Source: Cyanophora paradoxa CCMP329
Taxonomy: Eukaryota > Plantae > Glaucophyta
Assembly: GCA_004431415.1 (NCBI GenBank)
Contig: QPMI01000150.1
Coordinates: 1-64,000, forward strand
Direction: 5' to 3'
DNA: 64,000 nucleotides
The notes beneath the pieces are model-generated. The model worked only from the letters and a program-made list of their open reading frames with translations. It searched no databases and was not told the DNA's origin. The position numbers and the translations under genes are program-made. Positions within the stretch are counted from its first letter, which is position 1, and each line of letters starts with the position of its first letter. Of this stretch, positions 3,226-62,100 are shown piece after piece.

Positions 3226-6200
3226 GCCGCGGCCGTCTCGGGGCGCCGGCGCGGGTGTGGACGTGGGAGACGGCGCCGCGCCCGCCGCAGCGGTCGGCAA
3301 GGCCGGCCGCCGCGGCCTTCAGCAGCCCGTCCTCCACCCGCTCCTCCCACCCTGCAGGGGGCCCCCCGATGAGGACCGGGGCGGGAGCCGCCTCCCCCCG
3401 GTACCGGTCGGAGCGGGACGCACGGCGGCCGTCGCCGGCCCACTCGGGGCTGGAGGCCTGCAGCAGGTCCCGCGTGTCGCTGTCCGTGCCCGCCTGCAGC
3501 GTGAAGAGCCGCCTGCGCGCGCGCGTGAGCGCGGGGCGCGGGGTACGTGGGCGGAGGCGGGAGGGCGGGGCGCGGGCGCGCTTGATGTCGTCGGGGCTGA
3601 AGTGCCGCACGGCGTCGCGCTCGTCCACCACCGCGTCGCTCAGCTCCTGCCCGCCCGGCGAGTCGCGTGAGCTCGGGCGCGCGCGCGTGCTTCGCCGCTC
3701 CGGCGCCGGCGCACGAGCTTGGAGATCTGGCGCTGGAAGATGCGCTCCTCGATGGAGCCGGTGGCGAGGAGGCGGTAGATGTGCACCGGCCGCGCCTGCC
3801 CGTCTGCCGGCCCCGGCCTCGGCCTCGGCGGCGGCCGCGGCACGGCGCGGGTCGCGCACCCCGCCAGACCCGCGCCATCGCCTGCAGGTCGTGCGCCGGG
3901 TTCCTGCGGCGCAGCGCGCGGGCGGCGGTGAGGCGGCGCGGGTGCAGTGCGGCGGAGGCCCCCGCACCAGTCCGGGTCGAACAGGACGAGCCGGCTCCCG
4001 CCGATGAGGTTCAGGCCCACGCCGCCCGCCTTGCTCGAGAGCAGGAACACGGCCGGGCCGGCCGGGGAGTTGAACCTGCGGCGCGGGGGCGTCGGGAGGG
4101 GCGCGGGGCGGCCCCGGCCCCGGGGGGCCGCCGGTTCACCTGTCCACGAGGTCCTGCCGCTTCGCAACGTCCGTGGAGCCGTCCAGCCGCGCGAAGCTGT
4201 ACCCGGCCCCCGCCACCGCCGCCTGCGGGGCGGCGCGTCGGCGAGCCGCTCGGCAGGGGATGCGGCGTTTCAGCGCACCTGGATGACGTCCAGGGTCCGA
4301 GTGAAGTTTGAGACGATTACGAGTTTCTCCGGCTGAGGCTGGGCCCGGGCCTGCGGGGGTACAAGCGTCGGCGGGCGCGGGGGGCGGGTTCGGGGGGGTA
4401 CACGCGCGTGCGCGAGGAGAGCCTCCAGGACGTCCAGCTTGCCTGCGAGCGCAAAGCTAGGACGCGTGCGCCGCGGCGAAAGGGGCCGTGCGCGGGTCCG
4501 AACCCGAGATCCCCGGCTGGTGGGCCGCCGACGGGTCGTACCCCTCCTCCTCGAAGATGCCGCCTGCGTCTGCGGCGGGGCTCGCGGCGGGGCGCGAACG
4601 ACGGAGCGGGTTACGCTAATCACCGGCGAAGCCAGAGGCGGACCCGCCGCTCCCCTCCTCGCCCTCCTCCCGTGCATCCACGTCGCCGTGCCTGCGCTCG
4701 CGTACCCCCTGTGGGGCGGCGGCGGGTAGAGCGCGCTGGGTCGCGGTCGGGCTCACACGAGCCGCGGGCTGTTGCACAGCTTCCGGAGCGCGTTGATGTA
4801 CGTGAGGACCTGCGGGGCGGTCCGCGGAGCGTGCCGCGTGCGGGGCGAAGGGGGTACGGCGATTCGCACCTCGGCGTAGCGGCCTGGCGTGAGGCCGCGT
4901 ACGGCGCGCGAGGAGAGGAAGTGGCGGTAGAGGCGTTCCTGGAGCCTGTACCCTCCCCGCCTCGGAGAGAGCGGGGGCAGGGCGCGGGCAGGGCGCGGAG
5001 CGCACGGGGAGAGACGGCAGAAGACGGTGTGCTCGTGCCTGGGGGGCAGGTAGCGCTGCCGCGGGGTGAGTGTGGCGGCCGCGCGGGGGCCCCGGGCCAG
5101 AGGAGCGGGGCGAGCAAGCCTGGAGGGTCTGCGCGGTGCGGCGGAGGAGGAAGGCGGCGGTGGTGCGGCCCAGCTGCGCCGTGCGCTCCTCCGCTGCCGG
5201 GCGTCAGGCGGGGCAAGGGGGCGGCGGTGGAGGCTGGGGTAGGGGGCACGCGCCGATGGCCTGCTCCTCGGGGCTGGCGCCGGGGTCCCGGCCCCGCTTG
5301 ATCGCGTCCGCGAAGCAGCGCTTGAAGGACGCGAGCGAGCCGAGGGCCCCCGGGCAGCAAAAGGAGAGCATCGCGTAGTACTCGTCGAGGGCATTCTGGA
5401 TGGGGGTACTGCAGAGGGGAGGGGGCGGGAGTCAGAGAAAGAAGGCAAACGGATATGATCATGTACCCCGAGAGGATGACGCGGCGCGGGGTGGGTATCC
5501 CCGCGAGGGCGGCGGTCGTGTCGTTGCCGGCCGCGTTCTTGAGGCGGTGCCTGCGGCGAGAATCTGAGGCCGCACGCCCGTACCCCGCCCGGCGTCGAAG
5601 GACGCCGCACCCCTCGTCGCAGACGAGGAGGCCGATGGACTTGAGGCCGTTGATCCGGTCCCGGTGCTTCTTGTAGAGCTGCGGTGGGTCGCTCGGACCG
5701 GGGCGGGGGCGGGGGCGGGGGCGGGGGCGGGAGTGGGGGGTACGGCGCGCCTCGTAGGAGATGAGGAGGAGGGGGCGGTGCTGCGCCAGCTCGAACTCCT
5801 TGAGTAGGTCCGAGGCCTGCGGGGCTTGAGGAGGGAGCCCGATGGGGGGAGCGCCGGCTCCGGGGCCGGAGGAGGGGCGTGGACCTTGGCGTCAGGGGAC
5901 GAGGCGGCGACGACGGGGTGCAGCCGCTCGTTCCCCAGCCAGCGCTTCACCTGCCGCCACCTCGCCACCCGAGGCGAGGCCGGGCCGGCGCACCGCGCGG
6001 GCTCACCTCCTTGGCCCAGTTCTGGACGAGGGAGGCGGGGGCTACCACGACCGCCTTCTTCGCAAGCGGCGTACCCCGGGGACTGGGGAAACCGAAATCA
6101 AACGGGAAGGGCGCGACGGGCGACTGGCGGCGGGAGGGGTACCCCTGCTTCAGCAGCGTCCAGATGAGCGCGATCGCCTGGTGCGCGCGCGGGTCAGGGG

Positions 6201-38300: not shown

Positions 38301-41300
38301 CAGGTTCATGAGGCACGTGATCGAGCTGACGGCGCGGCCGGCGGAGCTGGGGGCGGGGGAGGGGGCGGCCCCGGGGGCGCGCCTGACGTTCGAGACCGCG
38401 AAGAAAGGCGCGCGGGTGCGCGGCGTCGTCCTCAACGCCGACAAGGACTCCCTCTGGGTCCAGGTGCCCGCCCCCTCGCCCTCGCCCGCCCGCCCGCCCG
38501 CCGCTCGATTTCCTTCGCTCACGCCCTCTGCGCGGCAGCTCTCGCCGTACGTGAAGGCGCGGGCCTTCGTCTGCGACGCGGCGGCCACCGAGGAGGCCGT
38601 CGCCGACCCCTCCTCCGCCTTCCCCCGTGCGCGAGGCAGAGGCCCCGCCCCCGCCGGCGCCTCTGAGCGTCTCCGGCGGCGGGCAGGGGGCACGCGGGTC
38701 GTGGCGAGAATCCTGTCGGTGGACGCGGAGCGGGAGCGGATGGACGTGGCGCTCAAGGAGGGGGCGACGTCGGGCGAGCTCAAGGCGGGGGCCGAGCTGC
38801 TGGGCCGCGTCTCCAAGCACCTGCCGGACGCGACGGGCCTGATGGTGCAGGTCGGCCCGCACGCCTTCGGCCGCGTCCACATCACCGACGTCCCCGACGA
38901 CGTGCGCCGGCTGGGATCGATCGGGCGGCCGCTCTCGCGCTGAGGGGGGCGGGCAGGTGACGGCGGGGGCGGAGAGCGCGGCGGAGGCGGTGAAGGAGCG
39001 GTACCCCGAGGGGGCGGCGGTGCGCTGCTGGGTGCTCTCGGTGGACGAGACGGGCCGCCGCATCGACCTCTCCCTCGCCGGCGACCGCCCGGCCTCCTCC
39101 TCCTCGTCGTCCAAGCACAAGGGCGAGGCGTCGGGCTCCGGTCACGGCGGCACGGGCATCCTCAACGAGGACGGGAGCCTCACCGACGTCGAGGGCATCG
39201 ACCAGCTCCAGGCCGGCATGAAGGTCCGCCCCGGCTTCTCTCTGCCCGCGTGTGGGGCGGGGCGGGGCGGCGTTTCTAGGGGGGCGAGACGAGTGTAGTG
39301 ATGATTGACTATTTATTCTTCTGACCCGCGGGTTGAAGAACCTTATTGTCGCCCCAGTCTGAAACTCGTCGCGGGTCTTTCGGGGGGCTTTTCGTTTCTC
39401 GACCCCATCCGGTCTAGATGATGATTGACAACCACTAAGGCATAGTTCGTCCTACTGCGGAATGACGAGCAAAATTTGTCGCCCCAGTCTGAGACCCGGA
39501 TGGTTTCCTTCTTGGGCGGGCTTTCGAGGGTTTTCGATCGCGTACCGGTCGTCGAGCAAAGGATGCGGCATAGTTCATCTGATCGAAAATTGTGACGATC
39601 AAACACTTATAGTCTTTCGCTCCTATCTGAGCTCGGCACCGGATTGTTTTTCTCCCCGCTTTCCGTTTCGACCAAGGCGAGCAGAGGATGCGGCATAGTT
39701 CATCTGATCGAAAATTGTGACGATCAAACCCTTATAGTCTTTCGCTCCTATCTGAGCTCGCCTCTGGTCCTTTTTGCACCCCTCTATTCATGTCTTTTTC
39801 GCATTTCGCGCATCTTTATTAATTGTCTGCTGCAGGTCCGGGCATGCGTACGAAACACTGAGGAGAACAAGGGCTGCTTCGTCTCCATAGGGCGGAAGGC
39901 GTGCTCGATCTGTAGTTTCTTGACCGGCACACACCATCTGACGCGGCGTCGCGCCCCGCGCAGGTCGTAGCAAGAGCGCTCATCAGCCAGTTGTCGGACG
40001 TCTTCATTCGCGATGTCAAGGGCGCTTTCCCCGCCGGCAAGATTGTCAACGGGAGGATATTATCGTGCGTGGCTCGCGTTTATGTTGGGGGCTAGCGGTT
40101 ATTTTTCCTTTGGGAAGACGAGTGTAGTGATGATTGACTATTTATTCTTCTGACCCGCGGGTTGAAGAACCTTATTGTCGCCCCAGTCTGAAACTCGTCG
40201 CGGGTCTTTCGGGGGGCTTTTCGTTTCTCGACCCCATCCGGTCTAGATGATGATTGACAACCACTAAGGCATAGTTCGTCCTACTGCGGAATGACGAGCA
40301 AAATTTGTCGCCCCAGTCTGAGACCCGGATGGTTTCCTTCTTGGGCGGGCTTTCGAGGGTTTTCGATCGCGTACCGGTCGTCGAGCAAAGGATGCGGCAT
40401 AGTTCATCTGATCGAAAATTGTGACGATCAAACACTTATAGTCTTTCGCTCCTATCTGAGCTCGGCACCGGATTGTTTTTCTCCCCGCTTTCCGTTTCGA
40501 CCAAGGCGAGCAGAGGATGCGGCATAGTTCATCTGATCGAAAATTGTGACGATCAAACCCTTTATAGTCTTTCGCTCCTATCTGAGCTCGGCCCTGGCAT
40601 CCCCTCTCTGCTTTCCTCGCGCTCGCCTCCGCCCCCCCCCCCCCCCCCCCCCGCCCGCCGGCCGCGCGCCGCGCCGCGTCCGACGGGCCTCCCTCTGCCG
40701 CGCAGGGTGGACCGGGAGCGGCAGCGGGTGGAGGTCTCGCTGAAGAAGTCGGTGGTGGATCGCAAGGAGGGGGAGGGGCGCCTCTCCTTCGACCAGCTCA
40801 AGCCGGGCCTCGTCGTCCGCGGCAAGGTCAAGAAGACCGAGTCGTACGGCGTCTTCGTGCGCATCAACAAGTCCGACCTCTCCGGCCTCGCACACGTCTC
40901 CGAGGTGCCCCGCCCCGCCCCGACCGCCCCGCCCCGCTCGAGGATCTCCAGCGTTGACCCCGCCCCGCCCCGCCCCGCGCCCGCGGCCGAGCAGATCAGC
41001 GACGACTTCGTGAAGAACGTGGGGGAGCTCTACAAGGCCGGCGACGCCGTCCGCGCCATCGTCCTCAAGGCCGACCCCGCCACCCGCCGCATCTCCCTCG
41101 GCCTCAAGGCCCGCCCCGCTCGCCCCGCTCGCCCCGTCGCCCCTTTGAATGACCGGGCCCCCGCAGACCTCGTACTTCAAGGACATCCCCGACGAGGAGG
41201 GCGCCGGCAGCGGCGACGACGACGAGGACGAGGAGGCGGAGGCGGAGGGCGGGGAGGAGGAGGCGGCGGCCGGCGAGCCGGCCAAGCGCTCCAGGAGAGG

Positions 41301-43272
41301 CGGGAAGAAGGCCGCAGAAGAAGAAGAGGAGGCGGAGGAGGAGGACGACGATCGACCTGTGCAGGATGCGCCCGAGGAGGAGGCGGAGGATGAGGAGGAG
41401 GCGGCAGAGGGGGAGGGGGAGGAGGACGGCCTCGACTTCATCGAGGAGGGCGCCTCTGACGAGGACGAGGACGAGGACGAGGAGGAGGACGAGGAGGAGG
41501 AGGGTGCGCGGCGCGCCCCAGATCATCCCCGAGGCGGCGCCTGACGCTGGGAACGCAGAGGGGAAGCCGGCGCTGGACCTGGGCGGGGGCGTCTCCTGGT
41601 CCGGGGGCGCCGCCCCCAAGGCCGCCGACAAGGCCTCGCGCAAGGCCAAGAAGGGCGCCGCGCCCGAGCCCGAGGTCGGCCCCCTCCCCCGCCCCGCCTC
41701 CGAACGCCTTTCTCTTCTGGGGCGAGTGCGACGGGACGCGGCGGGGGCGCAGGAGCCCAAGTCGGAGGCGGACGCGAAGAAGGAGGAGAAGAAGAAGCGG
41801 CGCGAGGCGAAGCGGGCGCTGGAGGAGGAGGAGCGGCACATCCGGGAGCGGGAGCAGGCGATCGTGGAGGGGGCGGCCCCGCAGAGCGCCGACGACTTCG
41901 AGCGGCTCGTGATGGGGAGCCCCGGCAGCTCCTACGTCTGGATCGCCTACATGGCCCACAAGGTCCCGCCCCGTCCCCCCTCGCTCCTCCCCCGAAGCTC
42001 GCTAGAGGCGAAATGATGGTTATGCAATGCTATGGCTGAACCGCGCGGCTCTTCCCGGGCCTCGCGATGAAGTCTCAACTTCCTTATCTACTCTGATCCC
42101 GCCTCCCCCTTCCGCCCCCGCCCCGCCTCGGCTCGCCCGCCGCCGCCTGACCGCCGCGCGTGCGCCGTCCGCAGATCTCGCTGACGGAGATCGAGGAGGC
42201 GCGGGGGGTGGCGGAGCGGGCGCTGAAGACGATCCCGTACAGGGAAGAGGGCGAGAAGATGAACGTCTGGGTCGCGCTGCTCAACCTGGAGCACAAGTAC
42301 GGCTCCGAGGCCACCCTCCAGTCCGCCTTCCAGCGCGCCGCCCAGACCATGGACCCCAAGAAGGCGCGCGCGCGCCCCGCCCGCCCGACGCCTCCCGCGG
42401 AGCGCAGGCGGCTGACGTTAGGTCGCGCGGCGCCGGCAGATGCACGTGCACCTGCTGAACATCTACGAGCGGGCGGGCGAGGCGGACAATGCCGAGGAGC
42501 TCTACCAGGTCATGACCCGCAAGTTCAAGCAGAGCCGCAAGGCCCGCCCCGCCCGCCTCTCTTTGCTCGCGCCGCCCCGCGCTGACGGGGCGGCGGGCGC
42601 TGCAGGTCTGGCTGCGGTACCTGCAGGCCAAGATGCGGCAGGGGAAGCACGAGGCGGCGCGCAAGACCCTCCAGCGCGCCCTCGAGTGCCTTCCGAAGCG
42701 CAAGCGTGCGCCTGCGCCCGGCGCCGCTTGCGCTCGCCCCGCCCCTCCCCCCTCGGCTGACGCGGGGCTCGCTCGCTGGGGCAGACATCCGGACGATCAC
42801 GCGCTTCGCGCAGCTCGAGTTCAAGCACGGCTCGGCCGAGCGCGGGCGCACCATCTTCGACGGGTGCGCCCCCTCCCTTTCCCCCCCTCCCCCGCCGCCT
42901 GGAGGCCGCCGCGCCTGAGCTGGGGCGGGGCGCAGGATCCTGCGGACGTACCCGAAGCGGGTGGACCTGTGGAGCATCTTCCTGGACATGGAGATCAAGG
43001 GCGGGGACGCGGGGGCGACGCGGCGCCTCTTCGAGCGCGTCGCCACCCTCAACCTCTCCTCCAAGAAGATGAAGTTCTTCTTCTCCAAGTGGCTCGAGTT
43101 CGAGCGTCAGGCCCGCCCCGCCCCGCCCCCGCCCCGCCTTGGCCGCCCCGCCCGCCGGGCCTCGCCCCCGCCTCCGCTGCGCTGACGCGCCGGCCTGCAG
43201 GTGGGGACGCCGGCGACGCAGGAGCACGTCCGCGCCGCCGCCCGCGCCTGGGTCGAGTCCAAGATGAAGTGA
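32350..43272 (+). CDS. RRP5: rRNA biogenesis protein RRP5 (PDCD11): multiple S1 domains plus C-terminal TPR/HAT repeats, many introns
   Basis: N-terminal EEDFPRG. S1 repeats ([40 protein letters not shown]). C-terminal [62 protein letters not shown] at 43270-43272. Confidence 0.97.
39288..39370 (+). ncRNA. Box C/D snoRNA 1 (copy A); D guide to the LSU P-loop G (E. coli G2251, yeast Gm2619; snR67/U31-like)
   Basis: C box GTGATGA at 39298, D' CTGA, C' TGAAGA, D CTGA at 39359, terminal stem ACGAGT/ACTCGT. Guide TGTCGCCCCAGT is complementary to the conserved LSU (G/A)CUGGGGCGGCA with one G-U pair. Confidence 0.88.
39405..39503 (+). ncRNA. Box C/D snoRNA 2 (copy A); D guide to the LSU P-loop, internal guide to GAACUAUGCCU
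   Basis: C box ATGATGA at 39418, C' ATGACGA, D CTGA at 39489, stem CCATCCGG/CCGGATGG. Guides AGGCATAGTTC and TGTCGCCCCAGT. Confidence 0.85.
39553..39635 (+). ncRNA. Box C/D snoRNA 3 (copy A); double guide to equivalents of yeast 25S Am807 and Gm908
   Basis: Degenerate C box AGGATGC; GGCATAGTTCAT-CTGA (D') pairs with GUGAACUAUGCC; C' GTGACGA; TAGTCTTTCGCTCCTAT-CTGA (D) pairs with AUAGGGGCGAAAGACUA; stem CGAGC/GCTCG. Confidence 0.88.
39676..39763 (+). ncRNA. Box C/D snoRNA 4 (copy A), tandem paralogue of snoRNA 3
   Basis: Same boxes and guides as 39553-39635; stem GGCGAGC/GCTCGCC. Confidence 0.88.
40116..40590 (+). ncRNA. Second copy of the four-snoRNA cluster, in RRP5 intron 40065-40705
   Basis: Near-identical to 39287-39760 (offset 829). 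By eye the only difference is a 1-nt indel near 40560. Confidence 0.88.
42005..42105 (+). ncRNA. Box C/D snoRNA 5 in RRP5 intron 41963-42174
   Basis: C-like ATGATGG at 42013; GCAATGCTATG(G)-CTGA pairs with LSU CAUAGCAUUGC; TTCCTTATCTAC(T)-CTGA (D at 42093) pairs with LSU GUAGAUAAGGGA; stem GAGGCG/CGCCTC. Confidence 0.78.
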
Positions 43273-59149: not shown

Positions 59150-62100
59150 TCAGTGTCAGTGTCTCGAGGCCAGGGTGATTGCGAGGCCAGCTTGCAGATA
59201 CATGTACACGAAGTTTATGAAACTAACTGCTGACCTGGCTATAGATCTAGAGCCTGTTCCCAGTTCCGAACAGGTTCGAATTCAAGACAAAAGCCACGAC
59301 CATCGACGCAGCAGTTCCCCAAAGGCTCTGCGTTTTGCGTTTACACTTGCAATTGCGTATAACGACGCGACGTCTACAGCTGGCGGAAAATGGATATAAA
59401 GCTGGGCTCACCACGTAATCGTGAGAGGAGAAAGCAGCGCTGAGCTTCGGGCACGTTTGGTAGCTGGTCGGGAGCGTTTGAGTTAAGACACATTTGATGG
59501 AAACCTCCGTATTTAAAGTTATGACTTACGAGGAGCACATCGAGCTAGACGGCGCTGCCGCTGTGGTCGGGATCCACTGGAAAACCTGCAATCGAAATCA
59601 GAAATCTAGACCTTATGTCGATCGATATCGAGAGGGTTATCGGTGAAGCGAAATCAGTCAGCTGACGTTGCCCATGACGAAAGGTGCAAACGAAGGGACT
59701 GCAGCAACCGACGTCACCCGAATATCGTAGGGGCTGCCAGCGACGAAGACAGAGGCGGGGCTCGAGGCAAGAGCCGATCGCGAGCGAAGGAGCTTCCGAC
59801 GAGTCGGCATCGCCGGAGGCTCTGCATGCGCAAGACATGTACACTTTATAAGCCGCAACGTCAACGTTAACGTTGACGTTAATTGAAGCGCCCATGGCCA
59901 TGGATAAGCGAAGTCCGACGTGCAACAATTGTAAATTAAATTTGTTCTTCATGAAGCGCTAGCGCTAGTAATTATTATAGTTTTAGATCGATATCTAGCT
60001 TGCATATTAATAGCTCTCAACTCTTCATGATCATATATATGAGCACGATTTCGAGCTCGAGAAGTGCAGGGTTGCAAATGCATTTCGCACGGAAACGAAT
60101 CTCCGTCGAGGAAGAAATCTCTGCAAATGGGGCATCCACCCACTGCTGCGTCGCAAAATCTACGATGTAGACCTTTATCGCCTCGCCTGCCTACGAGCTC
60201 ATGATCATGATCACGATCATGCATTTTGGTGACATGAAATTTCGAATTTATAATCGATCGCGAAGCGCACTGGAAGGCCAGATCCGCGGACGCTGATGAT
60301 TTGGGAGTCACCGGGCTGCGAGAAAGTCGAATGAGACAACTTGAATTCAAATGTAATAGTGTACACGTGTACGTCTTTTTCGACTTGGGCAGACTCACAA
60401 TTGGAGTGCGGACAATAACAACACCAAGATCAATGCGAGCGGCTCCGTCCTAAATGGAATATAATGCATTGTCAAGAAATTCATGTGCGCAGACTTGAAA
60501 CATTGCCAAGACATGCATATGTCAGCCTCGAGCGCGCGAACCCCCAAAGTCGCGTGGGAGCCAGCAGAAGACAGATTGAAGAAGGTCCCAGCAAAGAGGA
60601 GCTGTACGATTACAAGGCGCGGCTGCAGGCCCGTGAACATTAGCTGAAGGCGGCGATCCGGAGTACAACATAAAATATTGTATATATATCAATGCCATTT
60701 ATATTACCAGCCCGGTAAAGTTCTTGGAGAAGCCCATTCCGGTAGATCCGGCCGCGGTATCCGGACGAGACGACGCGACGTCGACAGATGGCGAAAATGC
60801 GTTCGCCGTCGGGCTTGGAGACGAGAACAAGCCGGCCGCGGGCGATATCGATGGAGTCACAGCTGGCCATAAACTCGCCGAAGGGCTCGGGCTGGGCGGT
60901 CGCGACGGGCCTGTGCTGGGCGACGGCCGCGGGCTGGGGCTGGGGCCGGGCGACGGGCTCGGGAGCGCGCTGGGGGAGGGGCTCGAGCTGGGGGAGGGCG
61001 ACGGCGTGGCCAACGCGATGATCGACGGAGACGGCGTCGCGCTGGGAGTCGGCGTGGGCGTCGGGCAGATGGCGGAGGTTGCTGTGCAGGAATCCGTGCA
61101 GTCGCATGCGTCCGTAACTGCACACGTGTACGTATATATGTACGTATACGTGGGGGGGCGCGGATGAGACTTGGCCGCAGTGCAAAACGGTCACCCGTAC
61201 CTCCCACCGACAACTCGTACAGGTTGTTGGAGTATGTGCTAGCAGCTCCTCCAGTGTAGCCGCCAAATAGGTAGGCTTTGCGCGTGCTGCTTCGATACCC
61301 GAACGCTCCGCCTGATCACATGAGTGCGCGTGTTTTAAATGTTAGCCAAACGTCAACGCCGTCAACGTCATCTTGCAACGGCACACGGGGCGCACTGAAT
61401 GTTGTAGACGCTGTTCCTCTCACGCAGACTCGCTGCCATCCAACTCCACACTGTGTCAGGCAGTCTGGCACGCATTGGAAGCTAAGAACGATTGTGAACA
61501 TCAGGGATTGGGTTTGCTATGACTTACCAGGCTTGAAAACCCACGCATCTGTTCGGACCACCGAAGTACTGACATCCCTTCCACCATAAACAACCTGCAA
61601 GTTCTAGTTCGATTTGCCAGCTCGATCTCACGCGTAAGATCATGGGCATGTACATGTACAGTGCTATGTGCATCGGCATATGCATCGAGCGCTTGCGCGC
61701 TCGCGCTGTACGCGCACGCCGTTCAAAACGAACACTTACCCACATTTCTTTTCCGTTCACTGTCATCTTCCAGTGCCACGCAAAGAAGCGGGGAAGGGGA
61801 ACGCAGGATGTGTTGACGAAAGTCCATGCGGGATTTGTTGCAGCCAGGTCCACGTACGCGTACCCCGTTTGAGCCCCCGTGCCAAGGTTTCGGCCACCAA
61901 ACATGTACATAGTGGTACCCAGGAGGGCACAGTGCGGGTTTTCTCTGATGAGCGGCTCGCGTGCAGTGTCTGCTGGAATTACAGTGGACCACACGCCTGT
62001 AGAGAAATTGTACTTCACCAGGTCTGGTTGAATCTCAAAGCGTTGATTGCGAAATACGCAAGCCGTGGTGATACAAAGCACTATATATAATCGTAATGAA

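Follow-up and report, generated by a model that had tools for sequence, protein, structure and literature searches.

How does the gene for a ribosome-assembly factor in a glaucophyte alga come to carry the same set of guide RNAs twice? This question is raised by a stretch of 64,000 nucleotides from Cyanophora paradoxa CCMP329 (GenBank assembly GCA_004431415.1, contig QPMI01000150.1, positions 1 to 64,000 of the forward strand), which we call the window, and in particular by a homologue of RRP5 that lies in it. An earlier reading made from the letters alone (the sequence-only reading) had proposed that one 612-nt intron of this gene holds four box C/D small nucleolar RNAs (snoRNAs) with terminal stems. 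We found these four units in the spliced intron, and we found the same four units again in a second intron of the gene. Our explanation is that two RRP5 introns each encode the same four-unit cluster in the sense orientation, within the host pre-mRNA, and that the near-identity of the two clusters is most likely due to gene conversion. We put the probability of this explanation at roughly 0.85.

Two introns of RRP5 with the same cluster

The host gene is RRP5, as the sequence-only reading had it. Homology searches were made with single exons as queries, one at a time. The C-terminal exons matched yeast Rrp5 chains (E 2.9e-23 and 3.2e-11), and an upstream exon scored above the Pfam S1_RRP5 cut-off. 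The splice evidence comes from assembled contigs of three presumed-RNA runs (X1, X3 and X8) out of three studies, and a DNA run (X12) served as the control. Spliced contigs skip exactly the two introns that carry the clusters, one of 612 nt and one of 641 nt, and also a 65-nt intron between them, whose removal is demanded by the reading frame (Table 1). None of these three joints was present in the DNA run, where the contigs are continuous over the exon-intron borders. From the frames, all three introns split one S1 domain.

Each of the four units in the first intron (cluster 1) has the boxes of a C/D snoRNA and a terminal stem. In unit 1 we found box C GUGAUGA (39298), box D' CUGA (39321), a C'-like UGAAGA and box D CUGA (39359), while unit 2 has box C AUGAUGA (39418) and box D CUGA (39489). 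Unit 3 has box C AGGAUGC (39560), box D' CUGA (39579) and box D CUGA (39627), and unit 4 repeats the boxes and guides of unit 3. The C boxes of units 1 and 2 are canonical, the degenerate C box that had been described for units 3 and 4 is there and keeps the GAUG core, and box D is CUGA in all. The terminal stems are 7 to 13 bp long; those of units 3 and 4 reach 12–13 bp and differ by compensatory changes when the two paralogues are aligned. All four units fold more stably than dinucleotide shuffles of the same unit (z = -2.3 to -3.0). When we scanned the whole 64 kb for motifs and stems on both strands, 10 of the 12 candidates were RRP5-region units on the coding (+) strand, and chance is therefore excluded as the source of the cluster. 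Two other C/D-like candidates, at 4257-4336 (+) and 61501-61578 (-), were set aside as probably chance matches; their C boxes are deviant, and the first is GC-rich.

Units 3 and 4 belong to the snR60/Z15/U80 family. RF00309 gave four matches across the two clusters (52.4, 55.5, 52.4 and 52.9 bits, against a gathering score of 41), with E values of about 1e-7 for units 3 and 4, and each of these two units has two guides on one RNA, directed to the equivalents of Am817 and Gm908, which lie 91 nt apart.

Between the second copy (cluster 2) and 39287-39762 we counted just one additional T and two base changes in the last terminal stem, so that the differences sit at the 3' edge; all other letters are the same. 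The spacers between the units are 100% identical and the intron flanks are unrelated. The two copies begin to agree 1 nt outside the terminal stem of unit 1 and cease to agree at the extended stem of unit 4. Contigs of the repeat have a depth of 84-97 in the DNA run, against 42 on a unique contig (39704-40145), which is approximately twofold. This unique contig leads from the last part of cluster 1 through exons B and C into the first part of cluster 2. We conclude from the depth and the link that both copies are real. Another unique junction contig covers 38508-39316. Since the exons are not duplicated, we rejected a tandem duplication of the full 829-nt period. The sequence-only reading was right to place a cluster in 39224-39835, but it overlooked the second cluster at 40116-40592, a further unit at ~42006-42104 and the AT-rich island described below.

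Table 1. Coordinates of the snoRNA units, introns and exons at the RRP5 locus (positions in the window).
Feature	Position	Strand	Evidence and remarks
Intron of RRP5 carrying cluster 1	39224..39835	+	612 nt, GT..AG; skipped exactly by spliced contigs (runs X1, X3 and X8)
Unit 1, box C/D snoRNA of U31/snR67/TBR7 type	39288..39370	+	Motifs, 7-bp terminal stem, fold z = -2.85
Unit 2, mosaic box C/D snoRNA	39405..39503	+	Motifs, ~11-bp stem, fold z = -2.51, alignment
Unit 3, snoRNA of the snR60/Z15/U80 family	39545..39642	+	RF00309 52.4 bits, fold z = -2.31
Unit 4, tandem paralogue of unit 3	39670..39769	+	RF00309 55.5 bits, fold z = -2.96; boxes and guides identical to unit 3
Exon B, part of one S1 domain	39836..39898	+	21 codons; RNA joints, frame; GC content at third codon positions (GC3) 0.76
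Small intron	39899..39963	+	65 nt, GC..AG; 65-nt skip in three RNA runs, cut shiftable to GC..AG
Exon C, part of the S1 domain of exon B	39964..40064	+	RNA joints, frame; GC3 0.73
Intron of RRP5 carrying cluster 2	40065..40705	+	641 nt, GT..AG; exact skip in X1, X3 and X8
Cluster 2, second copy of units 1-4	40116..40592	+	Self-comparison; RF00309 matches at 40379-40467 and 40504-40593
Unit 5, box C/D-like	~42006..42104	+	In a later predicted RRP5 intron; motif scan, 6-bp stem
Copy of the 162-nt unit-5 segment	43724..43885	+	98% identical, includes the 3' splice-site flank; ~450 nt after the RRP5 stop codon

Guide targets on the large subunit rRNA

There is no ribosomal RNA (rRNA) gene within the 64-kb window according to an Rfam scan. 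For the target tests we used 117 metagenomic ribosomal DNA (rDNA) stretches, retrieved by a pattern that spans both snR60-type sites, in place of the native rRNA. Two of the 117 stretches were tested and both are complete eukaryotic rDNA units, with large subunit (LSU) scores of more than 3000 bits. A scan of viral contigs with a eukaryotic LSU pattern gave no match.

Of the rDNAs, 17 extend as far as the LSU P-loop, and in 16 of them the D guide of units 1 and 2, UGUCGCCCCAGU, which adjoins box D, forms a duplex of 12 bp there. The second G of CUGGGG, numbered 2251 in the 23S gene of E. coli K-12, then lies opposite the fifth nucleotide upstream of box D. Since the P-loop site is absent from the fetch pattern, this match is an independent test of the guide. 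On complementarity, units 1 and 2 are thus predicted to direct 2'-O-methylation of this P-loop nucleotide (G2251 in E. coli, Gm2619 in yeast), which the sequence-only reading had also named as a target. In yeast, snR67 guides Gm2619 and Um2724 (PMC5199042), and no match to the second of these sites was found. The D' guide of unit 1 had no rRNA target above shuffled guides; its best recurrent 9-mer match is G-U-rich.

For units 3 and 4, the D' guide pairs over 12 bp with the equivalent of Am817 in 113 of the 117 rDNAs, and the D guide pairs over 17 bp with the equivalent of Gm908. Both units are predicted to direct methylation at these two snR60/U80 sites. The three target nucleotides that had been derived with the +5 rule are borne out by the rDNA pairing, and so is the assignment of one of them to Gm908 and snR60 (PMC5199042). 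The second A of GAAC had been assigned to Am807, but it corresponds to Am817, because a distance of 91 nt separates the two snR60-type target nucleotides in each of the 80 rDNA matches with listed coordinates, and this spacing equals 908-817. In yeast, Am807 is guided by snR39/59 and both Am817 and Gm908 are guided by snR60 (PMC5199042). The further claim that the pairing of guides on one RNA differs from yeast falls for the same reason, and because both guides match the RF00309 consensus: this is the canonical snR60/U80 arrangement (PMC3511168).

Unit 2 as a mosaic

Unit 2 combines parts of both types. In the alignment it has the C box, the UUGAC after the C box and the D guide in common with unit 1. 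At its centre stands GGCAUAGUUCGUC, which is similar to the D' guide of units 3 and 4; the CUGA that comes next in those two units is CCUA here. In 115-116 of the 117 rDNAs, this element can pair with LSU over 12-13 nt. We read the CCUA as a putative decayed D' motif, and we regard the antisense element, which is directed to the Am817 site, as probably a relic or a mere helper pairing. We rejected CUGC as a D' box for unit 2, since guide positions 1-3 pair at just 1/3 and the +5 position is a G-U wobble.

An element in the 5' part of unit 2, ACCACUAAGG (39425-39440), pairs with LSU UCUUGGUGGU in 44 of 72 rDNAs, with two G-U pairs included. The LSU segment is found ~635 nt after the Am817-type site, and the pairing is better than that of all 12 shuffles tried. 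It lacks a valid +5 register and might be an accessory pairing.

Expression and processing

Low-depth intronic contigs of the RNA runs span the spacer that separates units 2 and 3 and the one that separates units 3 and 4, and another runs from exon C into cluster 2. These contigs fit a multi-unit precursor; contigs cannot show RNA ends. The spacers are 35-50 nt long and U-rich, and they align poorly with each other.

We propose that Snu13, Nop58, Nop56 and fibrillarin would assemble on each C/D motif, that the short U-rich spacers would be cut, and that exonucleases would then trim the pieces to the protein-protected terminal stems and leave RNAs of ~85-100 nt. Endonucleolytic cuts between the units followed by exonucleolytic trimming are a reasonable inference from plant and yeast systems (PMC7671301). 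At the level of DNA, gene conversion anchored in the selected outer units would keep the two clusters identical, and the proposed anchoring would also be the reason why the identity ends at the ends of the outer snoRNAs.

Unit 5 and its copy

A fifth unit was found in a later intron, upstream of the RRP5 stop codon (43270-43272). It has box C AUGAUGG (42013), a D' box CUGA and box D CUGA (42093), is unrelated to units 1-4 and has no match in Rfam. Conserved LSU GUAGAUAAGGGAAG is covered by 60 of the loci, and in roughly 40 of these the D guide of unit 5 can pair with it over 11-12 nt; the predicted target nucleotide is the G of GUAGAUAAGG. We found no link between this LSU position and a known methylation site, and we identified no target for the D' guide. 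The duplicate of unit 5 may belong to an intron of the 3' UTR or to the next gene. It includes plain intron sequence and a splice site, from which we conclude that duplication at the level of DNA operates at the RRP5 locus.

Base composition

The two exons between the clusters are low in GC3 (Table 1); five further RRP5 exons have values of 0.97-1.00. GC content is 0.42 and 0.53 in the inward intron flanks and 0.79 and 0.84 in the outward ones, of which the latter values are those of the background. Because the low-GC3 exons lie between AT-rich inward flanks and the outward flanks are at background, we treat 39287-40592 as one AT-rich island of 1.3 kb.

We made a few further observations on the introns. 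Those in the RRP5 region are mostly just 55-90 nt long with a GC content of 80-86%. GC..AG borders occur in 2 of the ~8 RRP5 introns that have spliced RNA contigs (39899-39963 and 41109-41166). There is a run of ~21 C at 40622-40654, in the 3' flank of the intron that carries cluster 2; the comparison with the reads passed over this part as a repeat.

Alternative explanations

RNA-mediated copying. Cluster 2 could have arisen from a spliced intron that exonucleases shortened as far as the protein-protected limits of the outer units and that was then reverse-transcribed and inserted into the neighbouring intron. The bounds of the identity are where such trimming would put them, at the stem start of unit 1 (less 1 nt) and at the extended stem of unit 4, but the same limits are expected of conversion tracts that have their anchors in the conserved outer units. 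The fully identical spacers between unrelated flanks also suit this account. The few differences between the copies are concentrated at the 3' edge, as is expected at the end of a conversion tract, and the duplicate of unit 5, with its non-snoRNA intron sequence and splice site, shows that segments here are duplicated as DNA. No poly(A) tract was found; target-site duplications were not searched for. We consider copying through RNA unlikely and keep gene conversion between the two introns as the explanation for their near-identity.

Decaying units. We also considered that some or all of the units are decaying pseudogenes which form no stable and active snoRNP (small nucleolar ribonucleoprotein), the main suspects being units 3 and 4, and unit 2 on its D' side. 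The C box AGGAUGC of units 3 and 4 deviates from RUGAUGA at positions 2 and 7, unit 2, compared with units 3 and 4, reads CCUA for CUGA, and no target scored above shuffles for the D' guide of unit 1. On the other side, 4 of 4 snR60-type copies have both guides intact and score above the Rfam threshold, the GAUG core of the C box is retained together with the kink-turn GA, and the stems of the paralogues have changed in a compensatory way. In addition, no further snR60-type gene was seen in the 64-kb window. We regard decay as quite unlikely.

The deviant C box is one of several points that weigh against our explanation. Units 1 and 2 are below every Rfam gathering score: against TBR7 (RF00295) they reach 25 bits and 31.2 bits, respectively, where the gathering score is 45, and their best scores against U31b and snR67 are 22.8 (gathering score 37) and 15 (gathering score 55). 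The match at the snR60 sites is partly circular, in that the metagenomic rDNAs were fetched by a pattern derived from the guides, although in 113 of 117 loci the guides pair over 12 nt and so past the limits of this pattern. The RNA evidence consists of assembled contigs, and the mature snoRNAs are predicted. The intronic RNA contigs have a depth of 2-4, compared with 68-84 for the mRNA, and could be unspliced pre-mRNA or DNA carry-over. Finally, the spacers fold no better than shuffles (z = -1.4, +0.6 and +0.3) and have no significant structure by which a cleavage site could be recognized, so we see no sign of the RNase III-type hairpins that the sequence-only reading had in mind for them.

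Assembly artefact. That the genome has a single copy which was duplicated in assembly is suggested by the length of the repeat (~477 nt) with its near-100% identity, and the best DNA run may be the window's own assembly data. There is hardly any chance of it, since the depth of the repeat contigs is double that of the unique piece which separates them, copy-specific variants are present in the contigs, one contig joins the end of cluster 1 to the start of cluster 2 through exons B and C, and the RNA joints on the two sides of these exons have two different lengths (612 and 641 nt).

A wider idea is that the mixed cluster behaves as a mobile or concerted unit, in which either an end-trimmed polycistronic intermediate or a conversion tract whose bounds are snoRNP-coding ends was copied between the two introns of one S1 domain, and that the 1.3-kb block escapes the force that raises GC3 to nearly 1.0 in the rest of the gene. 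We find this rather doubtful. If it were true, the block would be a natural marker both for the spread of snoRNA clusters among introns and for the extreme base composition of this genome.

Comparison with known systems

The locus adds confidently annotated members of two ancient guide-RNA families (snR60/U80 and a P-loop guide of U31/snR67 type) in a little-studied and extremely GC-rich alga. Both snR60/U80/AtU80 and snR67/U31/AtU31-AtsnoR35 are among the snoRNA families that have been traced to the last eukaryotic common ancestor (PMC3511168). A literature search found no snoRNA survey of glaucophytes or of Cyanophora paradoxa. For the evolution and movement of snoRNA clusters, the locus is of use because a whole cluster is duplicated within the introns of one domain, unit 2 is a mosaic, and the island has relaxed codon bias.

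Rrp5 is not known to be a snoRNP protein. The idea that RRP5 co-expresses its own guide polycistron is an over-reading, as ribosome-biogenesis genes are common hosts and make up 33% of the hosts of intronic snoRNAs in Ostreococcus (PMC7671301).

snR60/Z15/U80 (RF00309, clan CL00070). Units 3 and 4 and their copies have both guides of the family in the same order, with D' directed to Am817 and D to Gm908. They differ from the family in the C box, which is AGGAUGC where the consensus is AUGAUGA, in the extension of the terminal stem to 12-13 bp, and in their occurrence as tandem pairs in a mixed intronic cluster.

U31/snR67/AtsnoR35 (clan CL00053) and TBR7. The D guide of units 1 and 2 picks the same P-loop G (yeast Gm2619, human Gm4166), and UUGAC after the C box is common to TBR7 and these units. 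In contrast to U31/snR67, the D' guide of unit 1 is without a target that we could find, and unit 2 has an snR60-type element in that place. By their guide, units 1 and 2 would act like the U31/snR67 family, yet by Rfam sequence score they are not members of it.

Plant and green-algal clusters. Intronic polycistronic snoRNA clusters are established in plants (rice and Arabidopsis), in Chlamydomonas and in Ostreococcus tauri, which has two, as stated in a passage of PMC7671301 that cites Chen et al. 2008. The RRP5 locus likewise has several sense snoRNA genes per spliceosomal intron, separated by short spacers, and the joints together with the positions of the units place at least two snoRNA genes on the host strand within one spliced intron. 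The host is also of the same kind, being broadly expressed and related to ribosome biogenesis. The locus differs from the plant and green-algal clusters in that the same mixed cluster occurs twice in RRP5, nearly identical, in introns that split one S1 domain, and in the AT-rich block between the copies. Since C. paradoxa is a glaucophyte, its lineage would be the third archaeplastid lineage with this layout. The known working of such guide RNAs is unchanged by these findings. The layout of the RRP5 locus is one that was already known, and what is new is this instance of it, which is peculiar in minor ways: the mixed cluster is duplicated, units 3 and 4 have a deviant C box, unit 2 is a mosaic, and there is an AT-rich island.

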